Assembly (NCBI RefSeq): GCF_001194135.2
Contig: NC_068998.1
Coordinates: 39,235,609 to 39,299,608, forward strand
DNA: 64,000 nucleotides
Direction of reading: 5' to 3'
Source: Octopus bimaculoides
Lineage: Eukaryota
The position numbers were made by a program, and so were the translations under genes. The notes beneath the pieces are model-generated. The model saw only the letters and a list, made by a program, of their open reading frames with translations, had not been told where the DNA came from and did no database searches. Within the stretch, counting starts at the first letter, position 1; every line of letters begins with the position of its first letter. Positions 8,671-58,020 of the stretch are shown here, in pieces.

Positions 8671-9139
8671 GATTGTGTGCATGCATATGTGTAAATCTGT
8701 ATTTGTCACCCACCACCACCTGACAACCAGTGTTGATGTGTTTATGTCCCTTAGCAGTATGGCAAAAGAGACTGATAGAATAGGTACCGCACATAAAAAA
8801 GTTAGGGGGGGGGGGAGTACTGGGGTTGATTAGTTCAACTAAAATTCTTCAAAGCAGTGCCCCAGCATGGTCACAATTTAATGACTGAAACAAGTAAAAG
8901 ATAAAAGATACCCAGGAATAACTACCTAGGAATGATCTGAGATCAAACAAATCAAAATAGAGTGGATATATTAAAGTTTAAAATGTTTCNNNNNNNNNNA
9001 AAAAAAAAAAAAAAAAAACGAATTGACTTTCATGTGTTCAATCCCAGGTTCAAAACTCAAACACAGTTTATAGAAATGTGCAAGAGTAGGATTACCTGAA
9101 GACACTTTGTTTATTAGACTGAATGAAATGTAGTATTAA

Positions 9140-18246: not shown

Positions 18247-18368
18247 TTATCGCGTAAAAACGTCTGCAGTTCTTTGATATTGTTAGTATTTTTCAAAACT
18301 TTTAGTTGCGGTCCGTATTCTTCATCTTTTACAATACAGGGGGCAGTTTGAATAAGGTCTGGCTCCAT
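18247..18368 (-). CDS. UPRT: Uracil phosphoribosyltransferase homolog, coding exon 1
   Basis: ATG at 18368 (ctactATGG) reads MEPDLIQTAPCIVKDEEYGPQLKVLKNTNNIKELQTFLRD+AA, then donor GTAAG (phase 2). Matches the animal UPRT motif G(A/P)QLKLL..NDQIRELQTIIRDK. Lies in a CpG-rich region. Confidence 0.92.
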
Positions 18369-18411
18369 AGTAGCACCCTTGCCATAAAGACGCTGACGCT
18401 GTCTTGACAAA

Positions 18412-18429
18412 TTTCCCGTCGACGGGAAA
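18412..18429. promoter_or_regulatory. Perfect 18-bp palindrome upstream of UPRT start
   Basis: TTTCCCGTCGACGGGAAA is its own reverse complement, 44-61 nt upstream of the UPRT ATG. Function unproven. Confidence 0.4.
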
Positions 18430-21400
18430 GGGAAGACAGTGACGGAGATTGTACTCTAGTGGCAAGACGGGGGTGCGCGCGATATGTGAATAGACTACTG
18501 CTGCTGGTGCTTATGATGATGATACCTATCACTCTCTTACTCCCTCTTACACTGTTTCATTCATACATTCTCTCAGCGTCGCCCCCGCCATCTCACTCCA
18601 CTTAGTCTCGTCTACGTACTCAGTTACTTTCCATGTAATTTAAATAGCCACGTATCCTAAACAACCGGTTTTGCGTACAACGAATTATTCTGTACGTGCA
18701 CGAAAGTGAATATAGCACATGTATTTTAAATGGTTATCACGAGTTTTCCTCAATTTAATTGTTATATAACATCTGTAACAAAAAATACATTATATACATA
18801 AATATACGATATATACGCACGTACAAAAGTCAAATAAAAACACTCTTTTCCATAAACCCATCCTTAATTACTTTTAAAAAAGCAAAACAAAAAAAAACGA
18901 AAGCTGGAAGAACCCTGGATATTCACAAATTCTCGATATATCATCTTCACTTTTAATCGATCATTTAAAACATTGTTATTTCACACACAATAAAAAAGTT
19001 TCCGAGTAGAGAGAAACGGCTGTTGTGAGGTTCTGTTAATTATTAAATACACACTGGTGACACCGGCTATCCTTTCAAACCTTGTGAGACTGGTTAATTT
19101 AAACCATTACCGTTCCTCGTGTAAAGTGGTTGTATATTGTTGTTAAATAACTTCCACGAGTATCAATCCTAATCGACCAGATTTACGACCAAAGGTATTC
19201 CAGCCAAAGCCATTCTATCTAATTTTAATACGAAGTATATCTAGGACATCATCCACTGTGTCTATTTTAATATTTTTTTTAATGATGAAATGTGACTTGT
19301 TTGCTTTACACAGCAATATGTGAATGGTCAAATAATAGTGTCGTAGTCGCATTTCTAACACTGAGAGCGATACCCTTTTATTTCTCGGTGACTTTTATAT
19401 CTTATGCCGATATATATGAGTGCTCAAAAACGAATTCTATTTTAAAGTTATAAAAAGAAAAAATTTAGTGGAGATTTTCAGCAACAAAGAAGAAGGGAGA
19501 TAATTCTTTAAGACATTAAAAAACAATTTCTCCAGTTAATTTCCTTTCAGAGAGAATTCTGTACGTTTTTTTAATTTAATTTTTTATTTGCAAGCCAGTG
19601 ACAACTATAGACATGTTTTGGTAGTGTAAGCTTACAGATCTGTAGATAGATTTTTACTTAAAGAAGTTGTTACAAATTGAGAATAAATAGTTGAAGATAA
19701 AGAAACCTCCCCCTTTCCTTCCAAGAAGAATATGCGAATATCATCCAGGAAACTCTGCATAATACATTCCATTGAGGAAATGGAAAGTGTTAACAAGCAT
19801 ATGTGGTGGAAAACCTTATTTTATGAAAATTACTGGGGGCATCCAACTGTAAATTGTCAAAGGTTATTAAGTGTAATCTTGCTATTATATATTAACTGCA
19901 TTTGAAGTACTACATGATTAGGTAAATGGAACTGGAGTACTGCTGTTTTCAAAGGATTTCATGGTACTGGAAACAAAACAGTGGGTAGATTTAAAACCTG
20001 AAAGTTCACCCACCTCAAATCAAAGATCTGGAACATTTCAAAACTAACCTATTAAAAAATATCATCTCCTACAATTCCTTTCAAAACACTTTGGATAATG
20101 TTAGAAAATCCTTGAAGTAATCCCTGTGTTAATACATTTACAGAAAAAAAGCCAAGGTCCTGACAATATCACACAAAAAAAAACACCCTGAAAAACCCAG
20201 TCTTTCTGTATACAGTCCAATAAACACAAGATGAATTAATCTTCATGCATCTCACCACACTTTTGCACTAGTTTTAGGGACTACATGCACACACTATTCC
20301 CCAAATACCAAATGTAGATTAATTCACCCCTCCAACTGCAAACTACCAATGGTTATCAAGTGTAATCTTGCTATTATCTATTAACTCCATTAGTACTTCA
20401 TGATTAGGTCAATGGAACTGAAGCACTGCTGTTATCAAAGGATTTCATAGCATTGAAAACAAGGCAGTGTGTTGGTTTACCTAGTTAAACAATCTATATC
20501 CACCCTATAACTTGGATGTTATTCTGAACATGGCCAGGAATTTCCTAACCATAGTAAGATGACACTTCTTAACACATGAATATTATAAGTTTTTTCAGTG
20601 CAAACAATGTTTAAGTTTAGGGATTCTTGTTTTGACAATATCACTTCCCAGATCCTTTTACAATCATAAACATATATCCATACATCCAACAACCAACTTG
20701 TAACAGTTGAAATTCATCTAATTATTCACTCAATATTTCCAGAGGAACTGTATACTGAATGTCCATAACTCTCATCATCGTTTTAGTGTCCACTTTTCCC
20801 TACTTGCATGGGTCACTGTATGGTGAAGAAAATAATTATATGGAGCTTGCCGAGAACACTTAGTCATTACCATCAGCACATTTATTCTTCCATTATTTAG
20901 ATCAACATACTTAGGAATTCTGTTTCTCTGTCCCAATAAATTTACAAATGCTGAGATCAAAGACTTAAATGTTCTTCCAAAGCATAGAACATTGTTGATA
21001 GAGTTAATTTTCATCTCAATGGTTCTCAAAATAGTGGCTTTAACTACATGCAAAGTTCCAGATATTGAAGTAAAATCATTTTGACGTTTATTTTTCCATA
21101 TTGGATTGAATAATTTGTTGGGCCAGATTTTCTACTGCCAGATGCCCTTCCTGTTTCAAAGTAAGGTAATAATTCCCCATGACCAGACATGCCTTGGACA
21201 ATGGAAAGCGAAAGACACCACTTGCATGACTGACTCTCACAAATACTAAAAAATGTCAAGACAAGTAAACAATAACACAATTTCTTTTATTGGCGACGCA
21301 GGGCCCAACACGGGGGACATTACAAGGATAGATAAGCGAACATACACAGTGTGATTACAATGAAAATGACAAGGTAGACAATAACATGCACACATTCATA

Positions 21401-21826
21401 TATGACAGGCTTCTTTCCATTTTCATCCACCAAAATCCATTCACAAGACTTTGGTTGGCATGGAACTATAGTAAAAGACACTTACCCAAGGTGCCACACT
21501 GTGGGACTGAATCCAAAACCGTGTGGTAGGGAAGCAAACTTGCCGTGTAACCATATGATGTCACAAGATAATTTTGTGAAGAGAAAAACTGATTTAAAGG
21601 AACCCCAGTACATGACTGGTATTTGTCCTGTCACACCCGACAGGCAGGATTTGAACTTATAACTATCTTGTTTGCCCTTCTACTATTCACCAAGGTAATT
21701 AATTACATGAAAATAATGTGAAACAACTGACTAAAAAACTGAAGTTGTAGTTTATTTATTCTAAGAAAGGTATTGGATTGCCAGGAATGGTTCTGAGACC
21801 CCCTTCAGTCATGGCTGATCATGGGA

Positions 21827-22127: not shown

Positions 22128-25100
22128 AGGAATGGTTAGAGTCACTAAATAATTACTTTGAAGTAGTTTAGGCATATCCACCTGCTTGAGTGTTGTATTT
22201 TATCAAGATTGACTCTTTTATACCTTTGTAGATCGTAAAAGAAAAATATATGTTATATACTAAAGGTAAAAGGCAAAGTTATCTTCTTAAGTCATACTGA
22301 CTCATAAGAGCCATTTTCATGGCACATATATCCCCCACCTGGATAGGGCACTGGTCTGTCGCAGGATTACTCATTTTTACAAGCTGAGTGGATTGGAGCA
22401 ATGTGAAATGTAGTGTTTTGCTCAAGAACACAATGCGTTGCCCGGTCCAGAAATTGAAACCACAATCTTACAAACATGAGTTGAACACCTTAAACACTAA
22501 GCCACACGCCTCCACATAAATTACATACTAGGTCCAATACAATTGCTAAACCAAAGATTCTTAAATGGTAACAAGGAGTATCTAAGTGTTCTGTAGATTA
22601 TTAAAAACTGATTTTTTAAGGCTTTAGAAAGTCAATATTAATACTTAATTATCTTGAAAAATGGTTTATTCATACATGAGCATGATTGATAAAACAAAGC
22701 AATAGTTTTTTCTTTCTTTTTTTTTTGTTTCAGTCATTTGACTGCACCCATGCTGGGGCACCACCTCGATGGGCTTTAGTTGAACAAAACCCCAGGACTA
22801 AATTTTGTAAGCCTATTACGTATTTTATTAGTCTCTTTTGCCAAACCACTATGTTACAGGGATATAAATACACCAACATAGGTTGTCAAACAGTGGCAGA
22901 GGTACAAACACACACACACACACATATACATGACAGGCTTCTTTCAGTTTCTGTCTACCAAATCCACTCACAAGGCTTTGGTTGGCCCGAGGCTATAGTA
23001 GAAATGAGACTGAACCTGGAACCATGTAATTGGGAAGCAAGCTTCTTACTACACAGCCGTGCCTCTTTTTTTTTTTTTTTTCCATGTAATGTATGCCAAA
23101 AATTCTTTCATTGATCTCCAGTGTACATTGAATTTAAAGTGACTTGAAACCATTTGATTTGACCCTTTTGTGGCAAATTTGTGGCTTGGTACCATTATTT
23201 ACTCTGAAAAGAAGTGACAGTGTCTATAACCTTGACTTGGCATTGAGGATAACTGGATGAAGCAACAATAGTTAACTTCTCAATTTACACTGTAGCAAGT
23301 TAAGGATTAAAAGAAGATAAGGAAGAATATGGATAGGGATAGGAATTGTAGAAAAATAATGTTCAGCAGAAGTAAGATAGGGTGAGTGAGACAACAGAAA
23401 TGGATTCTGCTACTGTAATAGTGTGTCTTTGTCAAAATTACAAATTTCATAATGTCTCACTAACTTGTACACTTTTACTTTTTCCAATAAGGTTTTTATT
23501 TCCCTGATCAAACTGAAGGAATTTTTCCATCACTGAAACTTGTAAGAATAAATAAGGATTCTTATGTGATTCTATATCCACATTTTACAGGTTACTGTAA
23601 ATGTGGGGGTTTGGAAATGGAGTGTAGTAAAAATGAAACAAAACCAAAATACTTCCTTCTGATAAGCAGATAAAAAATTATCTGTCCTGGATAGGAAATA
23701 TACTTCCCAGATAATGTAATACCTATTCTGCTACATTTAAGAACTCTGAGGTATACAGAAAGAAATGTCTGGCTAAAAGACACAACAATATGCCCACCAG
23801 TAGATTTGAACTTAAGATCTCTGAGCTGGTAGTCCAATATTATATCCATTTCACTTCTCATGTGAATTATGGGTGAAAGTATTGCTAGAATATCCAGTGA
23901 TCCGCTTAAATTATAGTATGCACAACTGCAATCTCTCAGCACTTAGTAATGTTCCACAAATTGATCATACTTGGTTCCCATTCGGTTTTGGCATTTGAGA
24001 TGTTGAGTGACCTATTTGAAGAATTAGTTTCTTAGTGTCTGTTTTCCATGCTGGCATGGGTTAGACGGTTTGATTGGAGATGGTAAGCTGGAGAGCTGTA
24101 CTTTGGCTTGGTTTCTATGGCTGGATGCCCTTCGTAATACCAACCACTACTGAGTGTACTGGGTGCCTTTTATATGTCATTAGTATGGGTGCCATTCACA
24201 TGTCACCAACACTAGGCCACAACCATGATTTCATTTAGCTTGGCATGTAAGCCCAGGATAAATTCCTTTACCCCGTGTTATTGGTGTTAAGTAATTCCAG
24301 TTATTTCTATTGTAGAAGAGGTAACTTGGAATATATGTTCCCGTGATCCAGAGAGATCCATTACCATAATAGTTTTTTTTTCGGGGGGGGGGGGGTATTC
24401 TGTGGTCCTGACTAAAAACAAAACAAAGCAAAAACAATTGTCTTTGTAGTTTTTCCTCTGTTAAGGGCGAACGTTCTCCAAGATATAATTACAATGGTGA
24501 GGCCTATCATCGCCCAGTTTTCATTATTTAATCTTGGGTCAATGCTGATCCAACAAACCTATGATTGGAGTTATTCCAGTCATAACTATTCAACATACCT
24601 ACAAAAGTGTGCTGCCACCACAACTTTGTTTCTTCATAACTTTCAGAAAAATAGATCTTATTTTTTTAATTAAATTTTCTACATATATTTTTCAAGTGGT
24701 GTAGATTACAATTATATGTAAAAAGAATATAAAATTTTTTTTAAAATCAAAACAGAAAAGTAAATTGTGGGTACGAACATACACATACTGACACGCAATC
24801 ACATAATTTCTTTTCCTAAATTTCAAGATATAGGCGCAGGCGTAGTTGTGTGTTAATATTGTGGGTTAATATCTAGATCCACCTCTTTCATATACGGTGC
24901 ACTTCAATTTTTCCACCAGGTGTGGATCTAGATATTAACCAGATTGTGTGCGCGCCCACCATTCTTTTTTTACATTATATTCCGATATAATCTTAATCAC
25001 TTTCTTTTTTAAATTATGAAGAAAATTTTAAAAAATTTTCCGAAACGGGCCTCTGAAAACTTTTTCACAAGAAATTCCGATACAGTGTGTAAGGTATTTG

Positions 25101-26512
25101 TACCAAATTTCATGAAAGAAAATAACCATTTTTCTGAAAGTTATGTGGAAACAAAATTGGTATGGAAGGCACATTTATATAGTTATGCCTTTACTAGTTG
25201 GTAGAGTGCGACTTTGAATAAATATCAATTTTTTTTCTTTCTAAAATGACTCGCAATCAGTTGGTCGTACCCTAACCATAAGGAAGAATGCTGTTTGTTG
25301 TGATTACAATGAGAAAGGGCTGAGTGGAGAAGATAGTGAACGGTTACACTGAAGGATAGCGTCCACTGTCCTCAAGCCCTATTGATTTACTTTAATTCGC
25401 TTCCTGGTTGTGAGGTTTTTGACCGTAAGCTATGCTGATCATAGACTGGTCTGATACTATAAACAACAATATACGACAAGGTGCTGGATTTTCTTTATGA
25501 TTTTATCGCAAAACTTTCCTGAAAAAGAAAAAGAAAGAAAAAGCGGACGATCCTTTTGCTAAGGTTCAATGAAGAGCGACTGCGCTGTGGTTCTTTTGGT
25601 TCGAGCTCTCTTTTGTTAACAAGTTGGGTCCTATAAGACTCAAAGGGGTTAGTAAAAGGATATTGTTAACCCTGGTAAATTTACGCAATCAGTATGTATT
25701 GTCCTTCCACAAACAAGAATGTTGTCTCATGTCCTTTCGCAAGCATCTGAGCAACAAAATAGACTTAATCAAGTTTTCTCGAATAGTTAAGCAATATTAA
25801 TAAAATAAAATTCGGATATAGAGATTGGGTTAGGGAACAAAAAAAAAAAAAGACAAAAAACTCACGATGGAGATGTTTTTAAACAAATAAAATATTACAA
25901 TATGCTTATGTTGAATTGGCCAGGGTCGGATGGAATAATCCAACTGTTAATTCATACTGGCTATTGATCAGGTGTTGCTTCGTAATGACAATAACCCTCT
26001 CCTCAGTCGATAGATTGTGTGGTGTGATTTCTTTAAAAGTGCCTCGCCTTGTCAGCAGTGTTGTAATGTGAAATAAACATTTATCCAAACATTTCTGAAA
26101 TCATTTACTCCTGTATTTAATCATTCACCTAAATGAGCTTTATCCTTTCTTAGAAAGATTAATTAAAATGCAAAAAAGTCAACTTATTTCGTAACTGAGC
26201 CGCCAACAAAAACACCAACTCGTAATAGTTTCACTTTGAAATTTATCTTCAAGGAAGTGCATTACGTCATTGAAAATAAACTTTAACACAAATCTTTAAA
26301 ATTTTCGTAATTTTTTAAACTATAATATTATATCTTTTTAGCTATTTATATATATATATATATATATGTTTAAGCAATTGTATCCGGATAAATTTCTTTA
26401 TTTTTATAAAACTACAATAGCATTTTGAGAGCAATGTTTTTTATGACTATAAGCGACCCTCGTTAGTGTGTGAGAAGTGAAGGGAGGTAACAAACGGTGT
26501 CGCACCACAGAG

Positions 26513-26668
26513 ATGGCCACTGCATTATTTCGCACAGCACACATCGACTGGAGTATTTCTTCTGAACTTATTTATTCTCTAAATCAATCGAAATCAGCTT
26601 TCCAAACTACCAGATTATTGCGATCTTGTCGACACAAACCATACCAGACAATATGGTTCAAACCTATG
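26513..26668 (+). CDS. ABCB7: ABCB7 exon 1 (mitochondrial presequence-like)
   Basis: gagATGG start; MATALFRTAHIDWSISSELIYSLNQSKSAFQTTRLLRSCRHKPYQTIWFKPM|GTGAGA, phase 0. Arg/Ser/Thr-rich with few acidic residues, in CpG-rich sequence, in frame with exon 2. Assigned by position and composition, not sequence conservation. Confidence 0.75.
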
Positions 26669-28452
26669 GTGAGAATTAATTTTTTTTAAAAATTTTTCCT
26701 TGTGCTGCGGAGAAGTCTCATCAAACCGATCCCTTAATTCGGTTTCGTTTGCCTATCGTAACCTCTACGCTAACGTCTCCAGTGCTCTTGAGAAAGAGAT
26801 GAATGCCAGAATGTCCCAAAATCTGTAAATCTAAGTCTTCGTCTCTCTTGCGGGACGTTGCCCTTTATAATAAACAACTTTCTCTACTAAACTATACGAT
26901 GAAGTATTTAAAAACGAGAGGTCGAGATTGTGTCACGTTAATCATTCTTCAACTTAAGTAGCTCTGATTGTTTACATTTTTATTTTGATGAAGGATGTAA
27001 CACTTTGATGAGCAATCGAGAACAACTTCACTTTAGGCTTATAGCTCGATTATTCAGAGTATGCACTTTAAATGATAAAAGCTGTTATCTATTTTCTCTC
27101 ACTTTCTTTGAAGGTGAAGAACTTTGTTATTTACCCGGCTTCGTTATTGTTCATTTTCATATGAATTATTTATATGTATTGATCTGTTAGTTTACTCTCT
27201 GCAGATTCATCCCCCCCAGAAATGGTTGAATACCTAGCTTGAAGTAATTTAATGAATCGTAAAACTGTTAGCGGGGGAAGCTTTGAGTGTTGTTTACTTG
27301 GGGCGACGAAAAAGCTTCATCGTGGTCGCAGAGCTTGTTAAAACATCCAAATCTACTTCAAATTACATTCTGCCTCTTTATAAAAGGGCACGTTGGATAA
27401 TGTGATCGGTATAGATTGTTTGGCAACCAGAGAAGAATTTGTTTTTGGTAAAATAGATACATTATTACGAAAATTTTCGCCAAATGTAACTCAAACACTC
27501 TAGTTTAAAAACAAAATCCAACACCATGATAGATTTTCTATAAAGTAAATCTTTAGGATCAAAAAAGTAAATGTCTTGATATTTCAAAATTTGAAGAACT
27601 AAAAAATTCGTTAACAAATCAATAGAACCCATATTAGACACCTGCACCACAATAATATTTAAAGAATGCGATTTTTGGAGGTAAAATAAGACAAATTATT
27701 CGATATATTTCAAAAGAAAGGAACTGGTGATAAACTTTTACACAATTAAGATTGTGAATCCGGTTGAATCTTAGCACCGACTATCGATTTTTTCGCAATT
27801 ATTTTAGATAAAATATGATAATAATATTCATGTCTGTTACTTAACTGTCAACAACCAAGGTAACATTTTTTTTCCTTCTGTACAATCCTTGCATCTTCTG
27901 ATCTTGTGCAGTTAGCGAGTAACGAAGGTAAAGGTTCCTTGCGGCCAAAACTTTCAGGTTTGTAGGTAAAGATCAATAGTGTGTTCAGACTCGAACCTTT
28001 ACGTTAACTTTCCTCATAGTTAGTCTCCAAGTATTCTGCGAGGTTTATCTCGAGCAAATGCTAATGTGGGAGTAACAATGACGGAAAAGTTTAAGACGGT
28101 AATTTCAGCCCATCTTTGAAACTTTTCTTAGAATTCCAACCAATCGTTTGTGAATTTCTTTCACTTTAAAATTAGAAGTTTTCCTTTAGAATGTTTCATT
28201 GAGTTAAATGGAATTTTTTTCTTGTGGAATTATTCGCTAGATAAAACGAAAAAATTTCTCTTAATTTTACTTGATAAAAATATAAAGTACTCTCAATCTA
28301 ATTTTATCATTAATATTCTGTTTTTAAATAATGCAAAACTTCATATATGATGAGCATCTTATTTTCGCCAAAATCACTCCTAATATTTGTATAATTGATG
28401 GGATTCGATTGCAAATTTTACCACTCTCACCGTTATGAAGAAAACCCTCCAA

Positions 28453-30226
28453 NNNNNNNNNNNNNNNNNNNNNNNNNNNNNNNNNNNNNNNNNNNNNNNN
28501 NNNNNNNNNNNNNNNNNNNNNNNNNNNNNNNNNNNNNNNNNNNNNNNNNNNNNNNNNNNNNNNNNNNNNNNNNNNNNNNNNNNNNNNNNNNNNNNNNNNN
28601 NNNNNNNNNNNNNNNNNNNNNNNNNNNNNNNNNNNNNNNNNNNNNNNNNNNNNNNNNNNNNNNNNNNNNNNNNNNNNNNNNNNNNNNNNNNNNNNNNNNN
28701 NNNNNNNNNNNNNNATATATATGGCACAAGGCCAGCAGGTTTGGGGAGAGGCCAAGTCGATTAAATCGATCCTCAGTGTTTAACTAGTACTTATTTTATT
28801 GACCCGAAAGGATGAAAGTTAGTCAACTCCGGCAGAATTTGAACTCAGAACGTAAACACAGGCGAAATGCCGCTAAACCCGGCGTGCTAAAGATTCTGTA
28901 GCTCGCCGCTTTAACCCATAAAACGTTGGGATTTGCACTTACATAGCATGGACTGCTGAGCACATTTTATGAAAATGAGACTACCATGCACACATAAAAA
29001 ACAAAAAATAGTTAAAATATCTTCTAAGTATATAATGTGACAAGTTTTACATCATCTTAAAAGACAATAGTTGAACTATCTCTTGATAGACATTTCAACA
29101 AACGCCCATAAATAAATGCATCTACCTGGGCCACGCTCGTGGCCTGTCGACCTGTGCCTGACGGCCACGGTTGTGGCCTATCGCGCTTTATGTGTTAATA
29201 AAATGAAATATTAAAAAATGAAACTATATCAGAATATACGGTAGATTATCTACTGTTGTAAATACTGAAATAGGAAGGCACTCGTTTCTTGATCATGTAC
29301 CCTTTAAGTTCCAACGTTAACAAAAACAGTTTTGACTAAAAACAAAATCCAACATTGGCAAAGGGCAACCGGTTCTACTTAAATACAGAAGTACCTACGC
29401 ATCTACGTAACCCTAAAACTAACCTTAACCGGGGCTAATGCAGTTTCGCACCTTTCCATGAAAAAAGCAATTTTTTGAAAATATTTTTCGGATTCCTGCT
29501 TTTTCATCCATTTATTTATTTGTCTGTCTATTTATCCCTACCCGTTTATTCATATCTATCTATCTATACATACATACACACATAACAAAATGCTTATTGA
29601 ATATAAAATTTTGAAAACGTGGTTGGATCTTTCTGATTTGGCGGGCACCATTTTTTATGTATGTTTTATTTAGTGTGTTTTCTACCGAAACACTTTAAAA
29701 CTTCGTATACTTGTATATTTTGTCATATAGAACAGAGAAAAAATTTTATATTCGAAGTTATTTCATGTTAAAAGTTGTATTNNNNNNNNNNNNNNNNNNN
29801 NNNNNNNNNNNNNNNNNNNNNNNNNNNNNNNNNNNNNNNNNNNNNNNNNNNNNNNNNNNNNNNNNNNNNNNNNNNNNNNNNNNNNNNNNNNNNNNNNNNN
29901 NNNNNNNNNNNNNNNNNNNNNNNNNNNNNNNNNNNNNNNNNNNNNNNNNNNNNNNNNNNNNNNNNNNNNNNNNNNNNNNNNNNNNNNNNNNNNNNNNNNN
30001 NNNNNNNNNNNNNNNNNNNNNNNNNNNNNNNNNNNNNNNNNNNNNNNNNNNNNNNNNNNNNNNNNNNNNNNNNNNNNNNNNNNNNNNNNNNNNNNNNNNN
30101 NNNNNNNNNNNNNNNNNNNNNNNNNNNNNNNNNNNNNNNNNNNNNNNNNNNNNNNNNNNNNNNNNNNNNNNNNNNNNNNNNNNNNNNNNNNNNNNNNNNN
30201 NNNNNNNNNNNNNNNNNNNNNNNNNN
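28453..30226. other. Assembly gaps
   Basis: N runs at 28453-28714 and 29782-30226; others at 8990-8999, 30755-30764, 37435-37646 and 57879-57888. Confidence 1.
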
Positions 30227-32559
30227 TCTTTGAAAGAAACTTGGCTACTATTTTTAGCAGGTCAAGCAATCATGCAGAACAGGAGTGGAGAAACCCTTTA
30301 CTGCTGGTAAAATTTTCCTCATATTCAACTTCTCTGAAAAATGTTTGAAGCATTAATTAAATATAAAATAGCGACTGAGACCTTTGGAGATATGCTGTGC
30401 TTGAGAAGACCTGGCAAGCCAAGTGAGATCGTAGCTGTGGCCAGCGTCACATAACCAGCTCATTTAAGAGTACCCTTCAATTGTCAAGCAATATGCTGTG
30501 CTTGAGAAGACCTGCTAAGTCAAGTGAGATCGTTGTTGTGGCCAATGCCAGTACCACCTGACTGGCACCCATGCTGGTGGCACGTAAAAAGCACCGTTTC
30601 AGCATGGTTGATGCCAGTGCCGCTGAACTGGCTCCTGTGCCAGTGGCACATAAAAAACACCAACTACTCTCGGAGTGGCTGGCATTAGGAAGGGCATCCA
30701 GCTGTAGAAACTCTGCCAGATCAGATTGGAGCCTGGTGCAGCCTCTTGGCTAACNNNNNNNNNNATTGGAGCCTGGTGCAGCCTCTTGGCTAACCAGTCC
30801 TCAGTCAAACCATCCAACCCATGCCAGCATGGAAAGTGGACGTTAAACAATGATCATGATGATGAAATGGCTCTCAATACTTAAAACGATATTTAAGTCA
30901 TTTTAATTATCTGGATCATTAATGCATTATAACATTTTAATTAATAATGTTAAGTGAAATTACAGGTTCCATAATTTTCTTGGTACTAACCTACTCCACT
31001 CATAAGTTCTTATGCACTTGGTACTAAAAAATTCCCCACCTTGGTGGAGAGCTTGTCTGCTGTTTATTGCAGTTGAGTACCTTTGCAGCAAAAGCAGTAT
31101 TGTTGCCTTTTACAACAGCAGAGTATTCAAATGTGTCTGGCACAAGAACCTCCTAGTCAAGTTGCCTGCCATTGGTGTCTGCCCTTTTCTCATCAGAAAT
31201 TTTTTGTCACACCACTCCAACACAATGTGTCAGTAAGTCTCTCACTGTTAAACATTCTACCAACAATAACATGCTCAGAGTTCAGTTATATCTCCTAGAT
31301 TCCTTAAGAAGAAACCTTGCAAACATCCTTTAATAGGTACACATCAATCTAATCTTCTTCAACAGTACTAAGATACTGTCGCCACATGTATTCAACCAAC
31401 ATTATATTCTCTCTACTCATAAGCAACATGAAGCTAAGTTCTTTTCGATCATTAGTCCTCAATGTATTTGATGAGTGTTTAAAGATGACATGACCAAAAC
31501 AAATTGAGTAAGACCAGAAGTTGAAGCACCTTAACCACAAGTATGTTAAGGCCAGTACCATGGATCATAAAGGTGGTGAACTGGCAGAATCATTAGCACA
31601 CTGAGCAAAATGCTTAGTGGTATTTCGTCTACTGTTACGTTCGACTTTGCCTTTCATTCTTTCAGGGTTGATGGGCTTCTTTCAGTTTCCATCTACTAAA
31701 TCCACTCACAAGGTTTTGGTCAGCCTAAGGCTATAGTAGAAGACACTTACCCAAGGTGGCATGCAGTGGGACTGAACCCAAAACCATGTGGCTGAGAAGC
31801 AAGTTTCTTATCACATAACCATGCCTGCACCTGTGGGGATAGTTTTAATAAATCAAAAATTTATGTTATATGGTGTTTGATATACCTGTACTTATCCATG
31901 TTGTTCGAAAACTGGTCTCTTTCAATTATTTCTCTGCGCTCATTTTCATTTAAACTATAACACTGAATTTACGTAATGGTTACAAAAAGTACTCAGCCAT
32001 ATATGTTATTATATGGTAAGTAGGTAATTCAACTTATTGAAATTATCAATTTACTATACAAGTTGTTCTCTAATGAGGGTTACACTTGCGTCTTGAAGAG
32101 GGTAGATAATTGTTCAGTTTTACATTCTGGCTCCAGAGAGGAAAACTGGTTCTGGAAATGTAATTTACTTTTGTTATTAATGTCTGAAAGAATGTTTAAA
32201 TTATAGCAATTAGTAAACTATTAAAAATGCAAAACAAATTATGAATACATAACTTCGGTGTGACATGACATGGTTTGGTTATGGCTGATTTCACACAGCA
32301 CTGGGCCCGAGAGAAATTAGCTTTAACTATTATTGTTAGGTCAACTAATTATTATTAATTGCTGTACCAAGTCTGAATCAAAGTTAGGTTTCATTTTTTG
32401 AAAGAAGTTTTTGATTAACAATGCCCTGAGATAAGAATATATACATTACAACTACATATTTTTCTATTCGTCCAACAATTAATAGGATTAATAACTTATT
32501 GATATAATCAATTATGGAATGTCTGGAGAGAAAGATTTATGCTTGACACAATTAATTGG

Positions 32560-34039: not shown

Positions 34040-35478
34040 TTAATGCTTCTTTCAGTGGCTTGCTGAAAAAGTTGAGATAGGGTTGGTTATGAGTTTTGGG
34101 TGAGGAACAAATCTTTACTTTTCATTTTTTTGAAGTTGATAAAATAAGTACCAGTTAAGAACTGGGAACCAATGTAATTGTCTTACCCTTCCCCTAAAAA
34201 TTGCCTGCCGTGTGCCAAAATTTGAAACCATGGCAGCAAGCTGGCAGAAACAGCACACAGGACAAAATGCTTCTCAGCATTTCTTATGACTTTACATTTC
34301 TGAGTTCAGGTTCCACCAAGATCACCTTTGCTTTTCCATCCTTTCAGGATTAATATAATCAACTATCCTCCACCTTCAAGATTTCAGGCCTTGTGCCTAT
34401 CATAGAAAGAATTATTATCATCAAAAGCAGGTTGAATGCAAGATAACTGCATTCCAAAAATTCTTTTGTGTGTTCAACAAGTGGAGAGATTCCCTGGTAA
34501 AGGAAGACCCTCCTTAGGTATATGGAGAAGTTGAAACAATCACTATAAACCCTACAGTTTAATTTAACATTTTGGGAAAGTTATTGCTTAGATTGATCTG
34601 CATGGCATAAAATGTGTCATAATGCATTTAAACAATTTGAGTTGAAGAAACAGAACAATGAAAGAATTATATCCTGCAATCAACAGACACATTAGTCCGA
34701 TCCCAGGCAAAATCAAAATCATCATTGTCCTCATTGTGACTTCATAGCAAAATCCATACCCAGACTCAAATTACATTCATGCATCCATTGTGAATAAATG
34801 CAGCTTCTTTTGTTTTTTGATCTTTTTTTTTAAAATCCTTTCCTTCAAACACTTATCATTATTATTATTATTAAGGTGACAAGCTGGTAGAATGATTACT
34901 GTGCCAGGCAAAATGCTTAGCGGCATTTCATTCATCTTTATGTTCTGAGTTCAAATTCTTCCAAGGTCAACTTTGCTTTCCATCTTTTCATGGTTGATAA
35001 GATAAGTACCAGTTGAGCACTGTGGGTCAATGTAATCGACATACTCCCCATATCCTGAACTTGCTGGCCTTGTGCCAAAATTTGAAACCATTATCATCAT
35101 CATTATCATCATTATTATTATTATTATTATTTGCAGGTCAGAGGTTCCACTGGAAAGGTGAAAAGCCCTAAGACTTTGAAGTTTTCATTGTTTACACAGT
35201 TCAGTAAACTTTTCAAAAGGGTTTGTATAAAAATCTTTGACTTGGTTGTCTTAAATATTAGCTTGGGTTGGAGCAAGTGATAGAATAACGATGAGACAAA
35301 GGATAATATATTTGATGGTAGCGGTGTTGTTGTTGCTGGGATTATTCAGATTTGTTATTTATTTACGTTTCTGCGTTCATAAATCAAATCTCACTGCAGG
35401 TGACTTTATATTTCAGTTGTCCCCCTTGAATTGATAAACGTTATGCTAGCCTATAAGTAGGTTATCTCCCTTGGCTAG

Positions 35479-35779
35479 GCGGCGCTCCATGTAGACAATT
35501 AAACTTCCGCAGACTATCCACGCTATTGTTATTGTTTCGATGATTCAGCTATCGAAGTACTTACTGTGCCTAAGTTAAAGAAATATTTAAGATTATATGG
35601 ACAGTATGTTACTGGAAGAAAGGCGGACTTGACTGAAAGGTATAAAAATTCTGTCGATGAAGAATGTCAACAAAGTAAATTCATCGGACGATACTTCAGA
35701 CAGGAATAAGCAGAAGCTTATATCTGCTCTCGGTGAAGCTAGGCTTACTCGAAATTCCCACATTCATTCAGAACATTAA
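35479..35779 (+). pseudogene. Disrupted SAP-domain ORF
   Basis: AALHVDN*TSADYPRYCYCFDDSAIEVLTVPKLKKYLRLYGQYVTGRKADLTER; 35560-35640 fits the SAP consensus LTV.ELK..LR..GL..SG.KA.LIERL. No ATG, in-frame TAA at 35500-35502, and a frameshift before IKILSMKNVNKVNSSDDTSDRNKQKLISALGE. Confidence 0.7.
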
Positions 35780-35965
35780 CAACAATTTCAATGTATTTAT
35801 TATTTGAATGCAAAATTGTTTATTAAAAATACCTGTACATCAACACAACAATTATTAGATTAAACATTCGAATTTGTTTCCCTCTTGAATTTTAACATGT
35901 TCTAATCTGTTAATGAGGAGATAAATCAAAGAGACATTTCACTCATCTACTAACTGCGTATATGA

Positions 35966-36244
35966 TCATGCACTTACTGATATTTTAAATACTTTGTTTG
36001 GAAAAACGGATGGCAAGGGGTGATCTTTCGATAGTCCATTAAAATCGACGAAATGCTGGGAACACATTTGGCTGTATGTAGTGTAAACAAAGTCTTTCCT
36101 CACAAGTCTCGATCTCTGAAGCCAAATACGACGAATAGCTACGTTTGCAGGATATCTATGTAGTGAAATAACTTTGCCGAACCAGTCAGTACAGTATGTG
36201 AGTCGTCTGCGGAAGTTAAAGCAAGTCACTGAGCATGCGTACAT
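35966..36244 (-). CDS. THAP (C2CH zinc finger) domain ORF nested antisense in ABCB7 intron 1
   Basis: MYACSVTC-x52-CSQHF...HPLPSVF with THAP landmarks C4, C8, H-x-Y-P32, W41, C61, H64, F65 and an AVPTIF-like box. Donor TCA|GTAAGT at 35977 and pyrimidine-rich acceptor at 35907 define a 71-nt intron; spliced product is 89 aa + IRTC*. Confidence 0.8.
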   Translation of the reverse strand: MYACSVTCFNFRRRLTYCTDWFGKVISLHRYPANVAIRRIWLQRSRLVRKDFVYTTYSQMCSQHFVDFNGLSKDHPLPSVFPNKVFKISVSA

Positions 36245-36435
36245 GTCATACGGGAGAGTTCCAATCAGGGGTGGATAACAACCTTATAGGAACCCCCTAT
36301 ACAAGTTGTCTATTCTATCAACTATACATCTCTTCCTTAAAAAAAAGTTAGTCCTTTATAAATTACCAATGTAAAGAATCCTAATTATGAATGGTTATGA
36401 CCAACCAAAAAATTTATTTCTATTTTACTATACAG

Positions 36436-36639
36436 CAATTTCCAGTTACCCTTGGAAAGAGAGGCTGTTTTCATCCTGGTGCATCAATTGGTTCAACAAA
36501 CTCTATCAGTTTAAAAAATGCAAAAGAAGTGACTGGCATCGATATCATCAAAGCAATCAGTAAGCATGTGTGGCCGAAAGGCAAGTGGAACATCAAAGTG
36601 AGGGTTTCAGTTGCCATCCTGTTACTTATCAGTTCCAAG
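36436..36639 (+). CDS. ABCB7: ABCB7 exon 2
   Basis: tatacAG|QFPVTLGKRGCFHPG...IIKAISKHVWPKGKWNIKVRVSVAILLLISSK|GTAAG; resembles ABCB7/Atm1 IIKAML.YVWPK...ARV. 204 nt, phase 0/0. Confidence 0.9.
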
Positions 36640-37227
36640 GTAAGATTTATCATAAGCTCTTTTTTTTTTTTTTTTTTTGAGAGAAGGAAGGATATTATCC
36701 AAAGCTGTTACTTGTCCTCCTTATGGGATGCTTGGGTTAACTGGATTTGGCTAATGAAAGGGAAAACTTAGGTAATGGGAAAGTTCCGCAGTTGGGGGTC
36801 TTGGAAGGAAGAGTTTGGCAACAGGCTGAGTGTTCTGGACAGGTACATTTATATATGTTTGGAAAGTAAATTTATTAACCACACAGACATGCCTGTGCAT
36901 CTATGCACACACATACACACACACATATACACACAAACACGCATACATTGCAGTTTATATATCCTAATTAACATGGATGTTTTATTAGAATGCTGTATTT
37001 GCCTTGAGAGATCCTCACATATACACAACTAAAAGTATTTTTATGTTAAACTGTATGAACAAAACACTGCTATCATTAGTACCACTATTTAAAATTTGTA
37101 TGCATGATTGAATACACACTTAGAACATTATAATATTTTTTATGTTTCTGTTATATATATATATATATATATAACAGAAACATAAAAAATATTATAATGT
37201 TCTAAGTGTGTATTGTATATATACAAT

Positions 37228-37391
37228 AGGCACGGGAGTGGTTGTGTGGTAAGTAGCTTGCTTACCAACCACATGGTTCCGGGTTCAGTCCCGCTGCGTG
37301 GCACCTTGGGCAAGTGTCTTCTACTATAGCCTCGGGCCGACCAAAGCCTTGTGAGTGGATTTGGTAGACGGAAACTGAAAGAAGCCCGTCG

Positions 37392-37434
<43 letters not shown>
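37228..37434 (+). mobile_element. tRNA-derived SINE family A (head GGC.CAGG.GTGG.TGTGTGGTAAG)
   Basis: A/B-box-like head (GTGTGGTAAG...GGTTCAGTCCC), body GGCACCTTGGGCAAGTGTCTTCTACTATAGCC, microsatellite linker. Other copies (approximate): 4331-4581(-), 5378-5752(+), 6600-7030(-), 12206-12305(+), 21390-21545(-), 22733-23063(-), 31675-31830(-), 42463-42835(-), 43451-43855(-), 46296-46510(-), 52434-52885(+). Confidence 0.85.
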
Positions 37435-38225
37435 NNNNNNNNNNNNNNNNNNNNNNNNNNNNNNNNNNNNNNNNNNNNNNNNNNNNNNNNNNNNNNNNNN
37501 NNNNNNNNNNNNNNNNNNNNNNNNNNNNNNNNNNNNNNNNNNNNNNNNNNNNNNNNNNNNNNNNNNNNNNNNNNNNNNNNNNNNNNNNNNNNNNNNNNNN
37601 NNNNNNNNNNNNNNNNNNNNNNNNNNNNNNNNNNNNNNNNNNNNNNGAATACACACTTAGAACATTATAATATTTTTTATGTTTCTGTTATATATATATA
37701 TATATATATAATGTTTATCATCACTTAAACATGGCTGTTCCATAGGAACCAGTGTTACTGCTTTTTTAACCCCAATAGGCTACCTCCTCCAGCTGGTTAT
37801 TCAATACGGTCTGTATCTGATATGTATTGCAAGCAGGGAAGTCTCATTAATACATAAATGCATGAATTTTTTATTTAATTAATTCATGATGTTTACAAGA
37901 TTTTCAAATATTTGTGATGCTGTTGTATATGTCTGTTTAGTGTGGCAAGCTAACAGAACCGATAACATGCTAGGCAAAATGCTTAGCAATATTTCCTCCA
38001 TCTTAACATCCTGAGTTCAAATTTTACCAAGGTTGACTTAGTCTTTCGTTCTTTATGGGGTTGATAAAATAGGTACCAGTTGAGTATTGGGGTCAATGTA
38101 ATCGACTTACCCACTGCCCTGAACATGCTGGCTCTGTGCCAAAACTTGAAATCATTATATATGTCTGTTACTTTATGTCCTCTCTATATCAGTCTATAAT
38201 CCTCCCTCTGTCTTTCTTCCTGCAG

Positions 38226-38355
38226 CTATTGTTGGTCCAAGTACCGTTTCTTTTCAAATACATCATTGACCATTTGAATGGCTCAGAGGAATATCTCAGC
38301 CTCATTGATGCCCCTTCAACCATTATCACTGTGTCCACATCATTAATTATTGCCT
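38226..38355 (+). CDS. ABCB7: ABCB7 exon 3
   Basis: ctttcttcctgcAG|LLLVQVPFLFKYIIDHLNGSEEYLSLIDAPSTIITVSTSLIIA+T|GTAAG; conserved VPF.FKY..D.L motif. Confidence 0.93.
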
Positions 38356-39613
38356 GTAAGTATGTCAGTTGTCTTCTTGATGTTTCAGCTTCAAATATCT
38401 CACTTTCATTTTAGTTTTATATTTTTCTCAATGTACTATGGAATGGTATCGTGCAATGGTTGTGAACACTTCAGTGTAGTGGTAGTATAGCTCCTTATTT
38501 TATGTGGTAGTGGTAGGATTTTTCCTTTGGTGTTGGTGGGCTCTTCTTCGTGATAGTAGTGTTAGTAGTAGTAATAAGCTTCTTTACAGTGATGTTGGTC
38601 ATGGTGATGGTATTAGTTGGCGGTGTGTGCTGATGCCATGTAAAATGCACTGGTGCTGGTGCCACATAAAAGGCATTTGTGATGCTGCCATATAAAAAGC
38701 ACTGGTGCTGGTGCCACTTAAAAGCACCTAGTACACTTTGTAAAGTAGTTAGCATTAGGAAAGACATCCAGCTGTAGAAACCAAACCAAAACAGACTATA
38801 GAACCTGGTGTGGCTCCTGGCCTTGCCAGTTTTGTCAAGCCATCCGGTCCATGCCAGTATGGAAAACAGATGTCAAATGATGATGATGAAGATGATGATG
38901 ACGCCATTAATCTGACCTGTCAGAAAGAGAGACTTGAAGTCCATATGTTCTGGTTTCCCTTCTTTGTAAACTTATTTATAGAATCATGTTATAGTGTCTC
39001 TAGAGAGGAAACACTGGAGTGATTTCTTGTTGGTTTTCTTCACACAGGTATGAAGTTTAATATATTTAAGAGAAATAATTCAGCTTTGCCTTTCATCCTG
39101 CCAGGGTCAATAAAATTTAATGCAAGAAGGTACTAGATATAATTTAATGAACTGATGCATGTCTCCTAGACTTCTTGAAGCAAGAGACTACAGCCATGAA
39201 TCCTTCTTGGTGTTGCTTTTGGTGTTGAGTCTCATGGAGGCGATAACAAGTGACCTGAGATTTTTGACAATTTGCTATGCTTGAAAAGACACATCAAGCT
39301 AAGTGAAATCATAGTCGTGGCCTGTGCCAGTGACAAATGAAAGGCGCCTGTGCCAGTGACATGTAAATGGCACCAGGTACACTCTGTGGAGCGGTTGGTG
39401 TCAGGAAGAGCATCCAGCCGTAGAAACCGAGCCAAAACAGGCTGGAGTCTGGTGTAACTCTCTGGCTTACCAGTTCCAGTCAAATCATCTACCCATGCCA
39501 GCATGGAAAACAGATGCTAAATGATGATGATTTACTATAGGATTACTGTATTTCTTCTGTTATGAGGTGAACTTTCTCAAGGTACTCTGTGGCATTATTT
39601 TACCCATATATAA

Positions 39614-39785: not shown

Positions 39786-39915
39786 TTTGATGATATATAA
39801 GTTATATAATTTTATTTATTTCATCCCGTTATCTGCTAGGCAGCTGTTTCTATTAACTGTTTTTTATTGATTTGTTTCACTTTCAGTCTTTTATAATTGC
39901 TTGCTTTCATCATAG

Positions 39916-40102
39916 ATGGTATAGCTCGGGCTGGTGCCAGTGGCTTTAATGAACTCCGCAACGCTGTCTTTGCCAAAGTATCACACAATTCCATACGAGA
40001 AGTTGCTCGCAATGTATTTCTTCATTTACACAATTTGGATCTGAACTTCCATCTCAGTCGCCAGACTGGTGCCTTATCTAAAGCCATCGACAGAGGAACC
40101 AG
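39916..40102 (+). CDS. ABCB7: ABCB7 exon 4
   Basis: catAG|(Y)[61 protein letters not shown]+AG|GTAAG; hallmark Atm1/ABCB7 transmembrane-domain sequence. Confidence 0.97.
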
Positions 40103-40689
40103 GTAAGTGGTAGCTTTCTTTTCCTTAAGAAATAATTTTCTTCATGAATGTATTTAGTTGTACATCTTCAGCTTAATTCAAGTAAATTAAGACATAATAT
40201 ATCCTATAAATTATGGTTAGACAGATTATTGTTTAACTCCAATTAGCCCTGATATAGATTAAGGTTTACCTCTTGTAAACTCCATGGGTTTGATTACAGA
40301 ATAACCCCAGTCAGCAAAAGAGGAGTGAGAGTGCTGTAAGTTAGTCCCATAAATCCATTTTGGTCATAGTCTTATGGTGGGGATGGGGGAATACACGCTG
40401 GAGTTGTTCCCCATTATCTTCTCCATGCCAACAGATGGCCTTGAATTCAACACTGTTGACATACAAAACACTTGTTTATTTTGCAGTGTTTTCATTGTTT
40501 AAAGCAAGTTGTTGCTTCTGGTAAATAGTTAATGTATAAGTGGAATGGGAGATATGAGTGTTTTAGTTACAGACACAATTTGAGTACAAGAGACTAGACA
40601 TGAATCACTACTCCTTTGGGTGGTTGTCTGCTATTCTGTTGAGCTAGCCACCCCTTTTCCTTTTATTGCCACTGCTATATATATATATA

Positions 40690-42287: not shown

Positions 42288-43278
42288 GTAAGTGGCATGT
42301 TCTTAAGTTTTCATAAGTTTGGTTTTTAACAACCTTAATTCCATTGGACAACACTTTGGTCAGGTTTCTTCTGCAATAGCCTTGCATTGAAGAATTCTTT
42401 GGAAATGAAATTTGGTTGACAGCTACTGTGTGGAAGCCTGTTTTGTGTGTGTGTATGTAGCTTTTATCTTTTACTTGTTTCAGTCGTTAGACTATGGCGA
42501 TGCTGAGGACCCCTTGGAGAATTTTTAGTCAAATGAATCGACTCCAGTACCTTTTTTTTTCAAAGCCTAGTACTTATTCTGTTGGATTTTTTACCAAACC
42601 ACATATGTTACAGGGGCATAAACACTCCGACACTGGCTGTCAAGCAGTAGCAAGTGGACAAATGCAGACACACTTTCACACACACACACACACACACAAA
42701 CAATGGGCTTCTTTCAGTTTCCATCAAACAAATCCACTTGCAAGGCTTTGGTTGGCTCAAGGCTTTAGCAGAAGACACTTGCCCAAGGTGTCACGCAGTC
42801 ATACTGAACCTGGAACCATGTGGTTGGGAAGCAGTTAAGGGGTGTGCTTCACAAACATATGTTTCTGGATAAAATTCTACTGAATGGTATGTAAGTTGAG
42901 GGAGATTTGACTGCTATTTCTAGCAAACCAAGTAACAACCGAGAGGCTCCCTTATTGGCTTGTAACAGCAACACCTGATGTATTAACTAATTAAAGATAG
43001 CAATAGTGAATGTAAATAAGGCAGTGAGCTGGCAGAATCATTTGCATGCTGGGCAAAATGCTTATCAACATTGTCTGTCTTTATATTCTGAGTTCAAATT
43101 CAACCTGGTACTACTTTGCTTTTCATCCTTTCAGGGTTGATAATATAAGTACCAGTTAAGCATTAGGGCTGATGTAATTGACTTACCCCCACCCCACCCA
43201 AATTGCTGGCCTTGTGGCAAAATTTGAAACCAAAATTCAATGTAAATATTGAACATGTTTTTTTCTTCGTTTTTACAG

Positions 43279-45886: not shown

Positions 45887-47283
45887 GTAAGATTCTTTAA
45901 CTTACACAAGATGAACATTCACAGATCCCTTAACAAATTTATTGTTACTGACTTTCCCTACTACTATTTCCTTGTCTGATTCCACTGTCTTTACAAACTT
46001 GAACTATTGCCATTACTTATCTATTTCATATTGTTGCATTTTGTGAACAATAGTTTACCAATGACTAGTCACAAGTTCAATACATTTTTGCGATGAAAGT
46101 GACAGAGGGTTGTCTCTAACTGGGGAGAAACAAATATCATAAGGGATTTTTCTACAAAAGCTCTGATTTATTGGTTTTATTGATTTATTGGGCAATATAC
46201 AACATCAAAAGATATAAACATCTATATGCCAGATTTTTTCTGTGATACTCATTTGCCCTTATTTTACTCTTAATTTTTATTCTTATTTCTATCTTTTATC
46301 TTTTACTTGTTTCAGTCATTAGAGAGAGAGAGACACACACACACACACACACGCAGAGCTTCTTTCAGTTTCCATCTACCAAATTCACTTACAAGGCTTT
46401 GGTCAGCCTGGAGCTATAATAAAAGACACTTGCCCAAGGTGCCACATAGTGGGACTGGAACCTGAAACCATATAGTTGGGAAGCAAGCTTCTCATCATAC
46501 AGCCAAATCTGTGCCAATGAGTATACATGATTTACAGTACTGAGTTTTTAATTTTTATTCAACCCACCTCAGTGTTTATATATTTTGCCTTTATAGTTAA
46601 TCACTTTTATCCAACAGAATCCCGTTATTTTGAAAATTAATTTCCCATAGAATAAACATTTAAAGATGATTAGCTTTAAATGTTTATTCTATGAGTTAGT
46701 AACCATAAATACTTATAAATACTTATAAATACTTATAAAGTACTGCATTGTTCTGAATACTCACGATTGTCTGATGATTGGTTCATGAAACTTTGAGTAA
46801 CAGTCATGAAGTCTTTTCAGCTTCAATGAAATTTTATTTTTCTCAATCTTTGGTATTCAAGTGTGATTTTTTTTCCACATTGGTTTGCTCGTGTGTGTGT
46901 GTGTCATGGTGTGTCATAGTTTCTTATTCCTCCAGTCTGTGTTCTACTTAGTTGAAGGATCTTATCTTGTAGGTGCTTGACAACCTTAAAAGTGCTGGTG
47001 CCACAGAAAAAGCACCTAGTACTCTCTGTTAAGTGGTTGGCATTAGGAATGGCATCCAGCTGTAGAAACCATGCCAAAGGAAACAGAATCTAGCAGAAGC
47101 TTCTGGTTCATCTGTTCTTGTCAAACTGCTCAACACATACCAGTATGGGAAAAAAAGGACATTAAACGATGATGATGATGACGATGACAACATATATATA
47201 TAATTTAGATAAAGGGATAGATAAATATACACATACATTTATTCACTTTTCCTAAAAGCACCAATTATTTCCCCATTTTCTAG

Positions 47284-57674: not shown

Positions 57675-58020
57675 TCATCATCATCATCCTCATCATTTAA
57701 CGTCCGCTTTCCATGCTAGCATGGGTTGGACGATTTGACCGAGGATTGGTGAAACCAGATGGCTACACCAGGCTCCAATCCGATTTGGCAGACTTTCTAC
57801 AGCTGGATGCCCTTCCTAACGCCAACCACTCTGAGAGTGTAGTGGGTGCTTTTACGTGCCACCGGCACGAGGGCCAGTNNNNNNNNNNGTAGTGGGTGCT
57901 TTTACGTGCCACCGGCACGAGGGCCAGTCACGCGGTACTGGCAACGGCCACGCTCAAAAAGGTGTTTTTTACGTGCCACCTGCACGGAAGCCAGTACAGC
58001 GGCACTGGCAACGACGGCCT
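57675..58020 (-). mobile_element. Repeat family C sharing the RTE 3' tail, ending (TGA)n
   Basis: GTTGGC.TTAGGAAGGGCATCCAGCTGTAGAAA...CCATGCCAGCATGGAAA.CGGACGTTAAATGATGATG, the same family as the tail of the RTE at 8430-8670. Other copies (approximate): 1410-1590, 9960-10285, 11220-11385, 14290-14400, 24040-24240, 30370-30865, 38620-38890, 39235-39532, 46980-47190, 48295-48470. Confidence 0.8.

Follow-up and report, generated by a model that had tools for sequence, protein, structure and literature searches.

A probable internally deleted ISL2EU-type transposon copy beside an ABCB7-type exon in Octopus bimaculoides

In a 64,000-nucleotide stretch of the Octopus bimaculoides genome (contig NC_068998.1, positions 39,235,609 to 39,299,608; hereafter the window, to whose first letter all coordinates refer), we identified an 854-bp element at 35445–36298 that is very probably a non-autonomous, internally deleted copy of an ISL2EU-type DNA transposon, belonging to the PHIS (PIF/Harbinger-ISL2EU-Spy) superfamily. 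Its extent is given by homology to full-length relatives, the closest of which lies in the mussel Sinanodonta woodiana (locus L003) and encodes a transposase (P0018) and a second protein (P0017). The octopus element retains only about 75 codons of the gene for the second protein, which begins with a SAP domain, and the first exon of the transposase gene, which encodes a THAP domain. Because the N-terminal parts of both genes and both ends are homologous to two-gene elements and the catalytic domains are absent, we interpret it as an internal-deletion derivative. A preliminary description of the window, made from the letters alone, had reached the same reading and proposed an 841-bp cassette at 35450–36290; the features it listed are all present, but homology places the ends 5 and 8 bp further out, and the full-length parent that it presupposed has now been found.

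Results

The element retains the 5′ parts of two convergent genes

Searches of the window with the parent proteins (tblastn) detected no remnant of a DDE transposase domain or of a YqaJ domain within the element, in keeping with the earlier statement that no catalytic domain is present, and self-BLAST and tblastn found neither a further copy of the element nor a DDE or YqaJ piece elsewhere in the 64 kb. Besides L003, the comparisons below use a second, degraded S. woodiana copy (L001) and a JGI metagenome contig (L002). The features of the element are:

35443–35444, no strand assigned: candidate left copy of a target-site duplication, the AT adjoining the SAP-side end (AT stands at the homologous position of the aligned ends)
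35445–35466, plus strand: SAP-side (left) terminus, which contains the previously described arm 35450–35466 and aligns with the SAP-side ends of L001, L003 and L002
35502–35514, plus strand: subterminal 13-mer AACTTCCGCAGAC, 5′ of the SAP coding remnant and the exact inverted partner of 36205–36217
35536–35740, plus strand: remnant of open reading frame 2 (ORF2; the SAP + SWIM + YqaJ gene), about its first 75 codons (Pfam SAP; tblastn with P0006 and P0017)
35741–35971, no strand assigned: AT-rich interior with the deletion junction (GC 0.28; left breakpoint about 35738–35741)
35972–35977, minus strand: splice donor GTAAGT closing transposase exon 1 (read directly in the sequence)
35978–36244, minus strand: remnant of transposase exon 1, with the THAP domain (Pfam THAP; tblastn with P0018)
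36205–36217, minus strand: subterminal 13-mer AACTTCCGCAGAC, the exact inverted partner of 35502–35514
36274–36298, minus strand: THAP-side (right) terminus, reading inward AGGGGGTTCCTATAAGGTTGTTATC, which contains the previously described arm 36274–36290
36299–36300, no strand assigned: candidate right copy of a target-site duplication, the AT adjoining the THAP-side end (AT at the homologous position)

The minus-strand THAP reading frame noted earlier spans 35966–36244 and matches Pfam THAP with 27.2 bits (cut-off 23.9). Residues 2–113 of P0018 align to this side of the element with E = 6e-32 in tblastn. The transposase exon itself ends at 35978, and the mechanically defined ORF continues to a stop at 35966. 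This exon end falls at the same point of the protein as the splice in the mussel gene, where P0018 continues after ...KVFQTS into its second exon; L001 reads TS-VSG there. In the alignment, the KYCCICS.YRGKNVDGK of intact relatives is replaced by LTYCTDWFGK in the window and in P0001, a short O. bimaculoides protein. This net deletion of 7 codons removes the first cysteine pair of the THAP domain, the authentic CxxC zinc ligands.

The plus-strand frame at 35536–35709 matches Pfam SAP with 24.1 bits (cut-off 23.9). The domain lies within 35536–35646, and a frameshift near 35633–35646 puts the remainder, to 35740, in another frame: residues 6–42 and 41–76 of P0006, and likewise residues 4–40 and 40–75 of P0017, match two different frames of the window. 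P0195 and other copies read IVIV-LRLIMDIKQL-DDSAIEVL, and the window has 2 nt between IVIV and DDSA. Replacement of the LRLIMDIKQL segment by these 2 nt indicates that the ATG of the SAP gene has been deleted. The SAP ORF of the preliminary description thus holds as a domain match but not as an intact frame. Judged from their sequence, both ORFs of the octopus copy are dead, the SAP frame having neither an ATG nor a continuous frame and the THAP frame having lost its first cysteine pair, and the element is now an inert relic that cannot move by itself.

Homology to the octopus proteins P0006–P0008 (...KLISALGE) stops at 35740 and homology to P0017 at 35737, so the deletion junction lies where it had been placed before, after KLISALGE at about 35740. 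The interior, 35741–35971, probably takes in the 5′ portion of transposase intron 1. A relaxed tblastn of P0017, P0018 and other parent proteins against 35741–35965 (225 bp) gave nothing above noise; residues 90–113 of P0018 continued weakly in frame at 35882–35960, a match judged unreliable.

The block is CpG-rich within a CpG-depleted intron, as had been observed: its CpG observed/expected ratio is 0.90, compared with 0.21 and 0.32 in the adjoining 5 kb on either side and a median of 0.23 across the window (computed without N, the compared windows being N-free and 854 bp long). The contrast is local rather than unique, since CpG richness of this degree is reached by about 9% of N-free 854-bp windows. 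A near-expected CpG content in a CpG-poor intron fits an insertion younger than its surroundings.

Full-length relatives carry both genes in one unit

L003 contains two convergent genes within a single 4.6-kb unit bounded by imperfect inverted repeats (41 nt, 76%) that begin TATAGGGCATTCCAATAAG. P0018 (gene ACJMK2_008524, 507 amino acids) matches THAP (30.5 bits), HTH_Tnp_4 (52.7 bits) and DDE_Tnp_4 (148.8 bits), and P0017 (gene ACJMK2_008525, 565 amino acids) matches SAP (25.0 bits), SWIM (17.5 bits) and YqaJ (67.0 bits). The preliminary description had looked to a parent with DDE and YqaJ/SWIM domains for its SAP and THAP peptides; P0018 and P0017 are such proteins, and homologues of both peptides do occur together in one inverted-repeat-bounded unit. 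This intact pair was found by searching with the conceptual products of L001, the S. woodiana locus around the mussel THAP gene. There, HTH_Tnp_4 and DDE_Tnp_4 pieces lie on the same strand as THAP, and a SAP-like exon, SWIM-like exons and a YqaJ domain converge on them from the opposite strand; the copy is degraded, and its layout is that of L003. The two copies are 90–93% identical over the 4.3–4.6-kb unit, and the sequence outside their THAP sides is unrelated.

More than 100 relatives with the THAP/HTH/DDE_Tnp_4 architecture were found (best 120 of 245 matches). Their named hosts are bivalves and gastropods, with no cephalopod among them. The full-length proteins with a THAP domain like that of the window (P0018, P0023, P0039, P0045, P0046, P0093 and P0095) all run on into DDE_Tnp_4, nearly always behind HTH_Tnp_4. 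The octopus THAP sequences P0002 and P0004 are 69–72% identical to unionid mussel THAP, which in turn is 54–57% identical to that of scallops and 46–52% identical to that of gastropods. The closeness of octopus and mussel, together with the alignment of non-coding ends across classes, could reflect either old lineage sorting or horizontal transfer.

In L002 (4011 bp), an ISL2EU transposase gene is interrupted in its HTH region by a second ISL2EU copy nested in the opposite orientation, with the SAP-side end of the latter at about 2298 (segments about 452–2297 and 2298–4011). An initial reading of this contig, with THAP and SAP on one strand and thus at odds with the convergent layout, was set aside when alignment of the termini revealed the nested copy.

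The ends align side-specifically with those of the relatives

The arms 35450–35466 and 36274–36290 are complementary at 14 of 17 positions, exactly as first reported; a match with at most 3 mismatches is expected 0.16 times per 64-kb window. Aligning both ends of the octopus element with those of L001, L003 and L002, we found that conservation is side-specific, each octopus end pairing with the same side of the relatives. The THAP-side terminus aligns with TATAGGGCATTCCAATAAGGTTGTTGTC of L003 and L001, and blastn of this end against L001 gives 74% identity over 73 nt. The THAP-side ends have in common ...TTCC.ATAAGGTTGTT.TC..CCC...GAACTCT...GCGCATGC, and the SAP-side ends ...CC.ATAAGT...TCCCTT.G...GGCGCT...AAACTTCCG.

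Inward of the termini, the inverted 13-mer lies 5′ of both coding remnants, and L003 and L002 have related ACTTCCG(C/G)(A/G)G motifs at the corresponding position of their SAP-side ends. The core of the 13-mer, CTTCCG, resembles an ETS-type promoter element. The 13-mer could be part of a promoter or 5′ untranslated region or, equally, a site for the transposase.

At all 8 aligned ends, AT (within TAT) directly precedes the homologous terminus, and the octopus element is flanked by CGTTAT on its left and ATACAA on its right. We regard this AT as a candidate target duplication. A 3-bp duplication in the mussel copies fits L001 (TTG/TTG) but requires an extra base in L003, and was dropped as unproven. 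In the two S. woodiana copies, the flanks outside the SAP side (L001 14217–14245 and L003 9447–9475) are about 67% identical over about 25 nt and those outside the THAP side are unrelated; either the true end lies further out on the SAP side, or both copies sit within the same kind of target repeat.

Assignment to ISL2EU

ISL2EU elements create AT target duplications, encode a transposase with DDE, HTH and THAP domains and a YqaJ protein in a second ORF, and measure about 4.8 kb (PMC4482050, PMC4122938, PMC9179366). Short non-autonomous families range from 746 to 1483 bp, among them ISL2EU-2_PXyl (746 bp) and ISL2EU-CTel (1287 bp), and ISL2EU-2, -3 and -4_CGig come from the bivalve Crassostrea gigas (PMC4482050 Table S2). 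For the ends, we applied the description of terminal inverted repeats of 6–259 bp with a usual GG start. The homologues carry the transposase architecture of an N-terminal THAP domain, HTH and DDE_Tnp_4, of which the window itself holds the THAP exon only. The second ORF is present as the YqaJ protein P0017, convergent with P0018 in L003, and L001 has the same layout. PIF/Harbinger in the strict sense is ruled out by a second ORF with SAP, SWIM and YqaJ domains and by flanks (CGTTAT and ATACAA) that lack a TWA duplication.

Several observations weigh against this assignment, or against the reading of the element as a deletion derivative that belongs to an octopus family. Domain architecture and the second ORF, rather than the position of the DDE domain among ISL2EU, Spy, Harbinger, Pangu and Nuwa references, are what place the element in this class. 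At the ends, the AT is not distinguishable from an invariant TAT that forms part of the repeat, the right terminus exceeds the left by 3 nt, and the first bases are GC... and AG... in the window and AGGG and TGGG in the mussel rather than the usual GG; the likeness of the two S. woodiana copies for some 25 nt beyond their SAP-side ends belongs here as well. No database protein reads through the junction at 35740. Exact-protein look-ups of the window THAP ORF, P0012 and P0002 returned no octopus contig and no second DNA copy, and the matches listed (best 120 of 245 in the transposase search) included no octopus protein carrying this family's DDE or YqaJ part. The side-specific homology of the ends and the convergent gene pair of L003 nevertheless lead us to hold the ISL2EU reading with high confidence.

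The family is annotated in octopus as fragments only

Searching with the THAP peptide of the window recovered five proteins: three short O. bimaculoides proteins annotated as 'THAP-type domain-containing', one from S. woodiana and one from a JGI metagenome contig. The best match, P0001 from O. bimaculoides, is 92% identical to the window. The SAP peptide recovered 11 short O. bimaculoides 'SAP domain-containing' proteins of 63–133 amino acids, the longer of which continue into a SWIM-like Cys/His region. Identities across the short THAP and SAP proteins range from 58 to 92%. So many short SAP and THAP proteins in O. bimaculoides indicate that the family is multicopy in octopus, where its annotation comprises fragments only.

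In an exhaustive search of representatives, we found an octopus protein, P0137, in which the SWIM part of ORF2 is directly joined to SKSLSMRTCHTGEFQSGVDNTL. This segment agrees at 21 of 22 residues with the plus-frame translation of window 36217–36285, where the THAP-side terminal sequence lies. P0137 thus joins ORF2 to the THAP-side end, placing both ends in one element family within octopus itself. It is a second type of deletion derivative, with a junction unlike that of the window. A further model, P0138, is chimeric: its SAP + SWIM start is followed by an acidic tail and a segment rich in Cys that looks SLCO/Kazal-like by eye only. This model reflects either an exonised transposon fragment or an annotation artefact.

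P0001 shares the THAP lesion of the window and has an upstream exon that is absent from the window. Since the lesion is common to P0001, which apparently derives from another locus, it is older than the window copy.

Origin of the short copy

We propose that the ancestor was a full-length element of about 4.3–4.6 kb in which each end would have comprised a terminal inverted repeat, a promoter with 5′ untranslated region and the first exon of a gene that points inward. Loss of the stretch between these two exons would strip out all catalytic sequence and leave both ends, about 75 SAP codons and, together with its splice donor, THAP exon 1. Such internal deletions in transposons usually stem from abortive gap repair after excision, and this one may have arisen in that way. 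The short copy could then have been moved in trans by the transposase of an autonomous element recognising the retained ends, and inserted at an AT; the ORF remnants would play no part in such mobilisation and would be free to decay. Further decay after arrival may account for the loss of the SAP ATG and the frameshift. The THAP lesion shared with P0001 speaks for a short element that was defective before trans-mobilisation brought it here, although it is no proof of this, and on balance we lean towards a copy that was both short and THAP-defective when it entered the ABCB7 intron.

Rather less probable, in our estimate, is that a full-length two-gene ISL2EU element inserted in the intron and lost its middle in place by ordinary deletion, the short form never having transposed. 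The lack of another copy with the 35740 junction among database proteins is consistent with this history, as are the different junctions of the other octopus derivatives (the tails of P0006–P0008, and P0137) and the several additional small deletions in the window copy. Such a history has to contend with the lesion in P0001, apparently at a different locus, which places a defective lineage before the window copy arose, and the near-expected CpG content speaks against long residence with heavy decay.

A quite different role would fall to the octopus derivatives if those with THAP only or SAP only acted as dominant repressors of ISL2EU in the manner of KP elements, in a family perhaps horizontally transferred from bivalves. 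Intact derivative peptides do occur (P0004 for THAP, P0006–P0008 for SAP), and by analogy with KP they might serve so, but we consider the scenario improbable; under it, the window copy would be a dead by-product only.

Very improbable is a non-transposon origin, whether as a chance pair of short ORFs or as domesticated host genes for small DNA-binding proteins within the intron. Both domain scores lie barely above their Pfam cut-offs, and many short SAP and THAP proteins are annotated in O. bimaculoides; both points speak for such an origin. It fits poorly with non-coding termini that are homologous to transposon ends of other molluscs, with homology that covers exactly the 5′ parts of two transposon genes, and with a SAP frame that has no ATG and is frameshifted next to a THAP domain without its first cysteine pair. 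Finally, THAP domains also head the transposases of P elements and Kolobok, two superfamilies that the preliminary description had left in play, but an origin from either is next to inconceivable given that the full-length proteins with a window-like THAP are of the DDE_Tnp_4 type, that the partner gene encodes SAP, SWIM and YqaJ domains, and that the flanks show neither TTAA nor a 7–8-bp duplication.

The host gene and the surrounding window

The element lies in a plus-strand gene orthologous to ABCB7/Atm1-type mitochondrial ABC transporters, in which the exon at 39897–40103 matches human ABCB7 with E = 4e-28. The element ends 147 bp upstream of the nearest host exon:

36446–36639, plus strand: host ABCB7-type exon (AG at 36444–36445, GT at 36640–36641; weak match to the ABCB7/Atm1 N-terminal region)

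The intronic setting claimed earlier is borne out; a host exon upstream of the element was not located. Further plus-strand segments of the host gene lie at 38073–38411 and 39897–40103, with others to about 54 kb.

Two multi-kilobase blocks, 15351–19600 and 24601–29750, have near-expected CpG (observed/expected 0.95–1.1) in this CpG-poor window and contain no ORF of at least 90 amino acids except one of 107 amino acids at 17859–18182. Either an unmethylated promoter region belonging to the host gene or further young insertions could account for them. Runs of N (8990–8999, 28453–28714, 29782–30226, 30755–30764, 37435–37646 and 57879–57888), which are assembly gaps or masking, skew the composition, so that GC seems to drop to 0.08 at about 37.4 kb and spurious CpG peaks arise at 28–30 kb. 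The 64 kb also hold more than 40 short (about 100–400 bp) interspersed repeat fragments of at most 12 copies each, which resemble short interspersed elements (for example 4408–4582, 21384–21541, 31670–31827, 37225–37406, 43015–43232 and 46333–46511); none of these overlaps the element.

Discussion

Our data extend the host range of ISL2EU by a cephalopod lineage, provide terminal sequences whose side-specific conservation extends from octopus to bivalve copies, and give the second gene of this ISL2EU lineage as SAP + SWIM + YqaJ. The searchable literature held no report of this ISL2EU family in cephalopods, and the suggestion that the family is undescribed there is consistent with that literature, whose reach did not include Repbase and Dfam entries. 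The short O. bimaculoides proteins annotated as 'SAP domain-containing' or 'THAP-type domain-containing' can be explained as transposon fragments rather than host genes. Beyond annotation, the importance of the element is small: it is an ordinary transposon relic, and nothing that we observed suggests an effect of the insertion on the ABCB7 gene.

Among known systems, the element resembles other ISL2EU transposons in the features of its relatives, namely a transposase with THAP, HTH_Tnp_4 and DDE_Tnp_4, a YqaJ second gene and a length of about 4.3–4.6 kb, and in its own terminal inverted repeats, AT flanks and mollusc host; short non-coding derivatives are likewise known from ISL2EU. It differs in its octopus host, which lies outside the 2015 survey, in ends without the usual GG start, and in a lineage whose second gene adds SAP and SWIM modules that go unmentioned in the cited ISL2EU literature. 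L003, the nearest full-length counterpart, agrees with it in same-side termini, in convergent gene order and in the end point of exon 1, at which the degraded copy L001 even has the GTAAGT donor of the window. L003 is, however, an intact element of 4.6 kb in a bivalve, whereas the octopus copy has shrunk to 854 bp with its whole interior gone.

The KP and other internally deleted P elements of Drosophila offer a parallel from another superfamily: they, too, are deletion derivatives of a THAP-headed transposon that keep the ends and the THAP-coding 5′ part. KP makes a working THAP repressor, whereas the octopus THAP, known from sequence alone, has no first cysteine pair. PIF/Harbinger elements and their Tourist-type derivatives, such as Ping and mPing, share with the present family a related DDE_Tnp_4-type transposase, a two-gene element and short derivatives mobilised in trans. 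Their second gene is of the Myb/SANT type and their target duplication is TWA, in contrast to the SAP + SWIM + YqaJ gene and the AT flanks found here.

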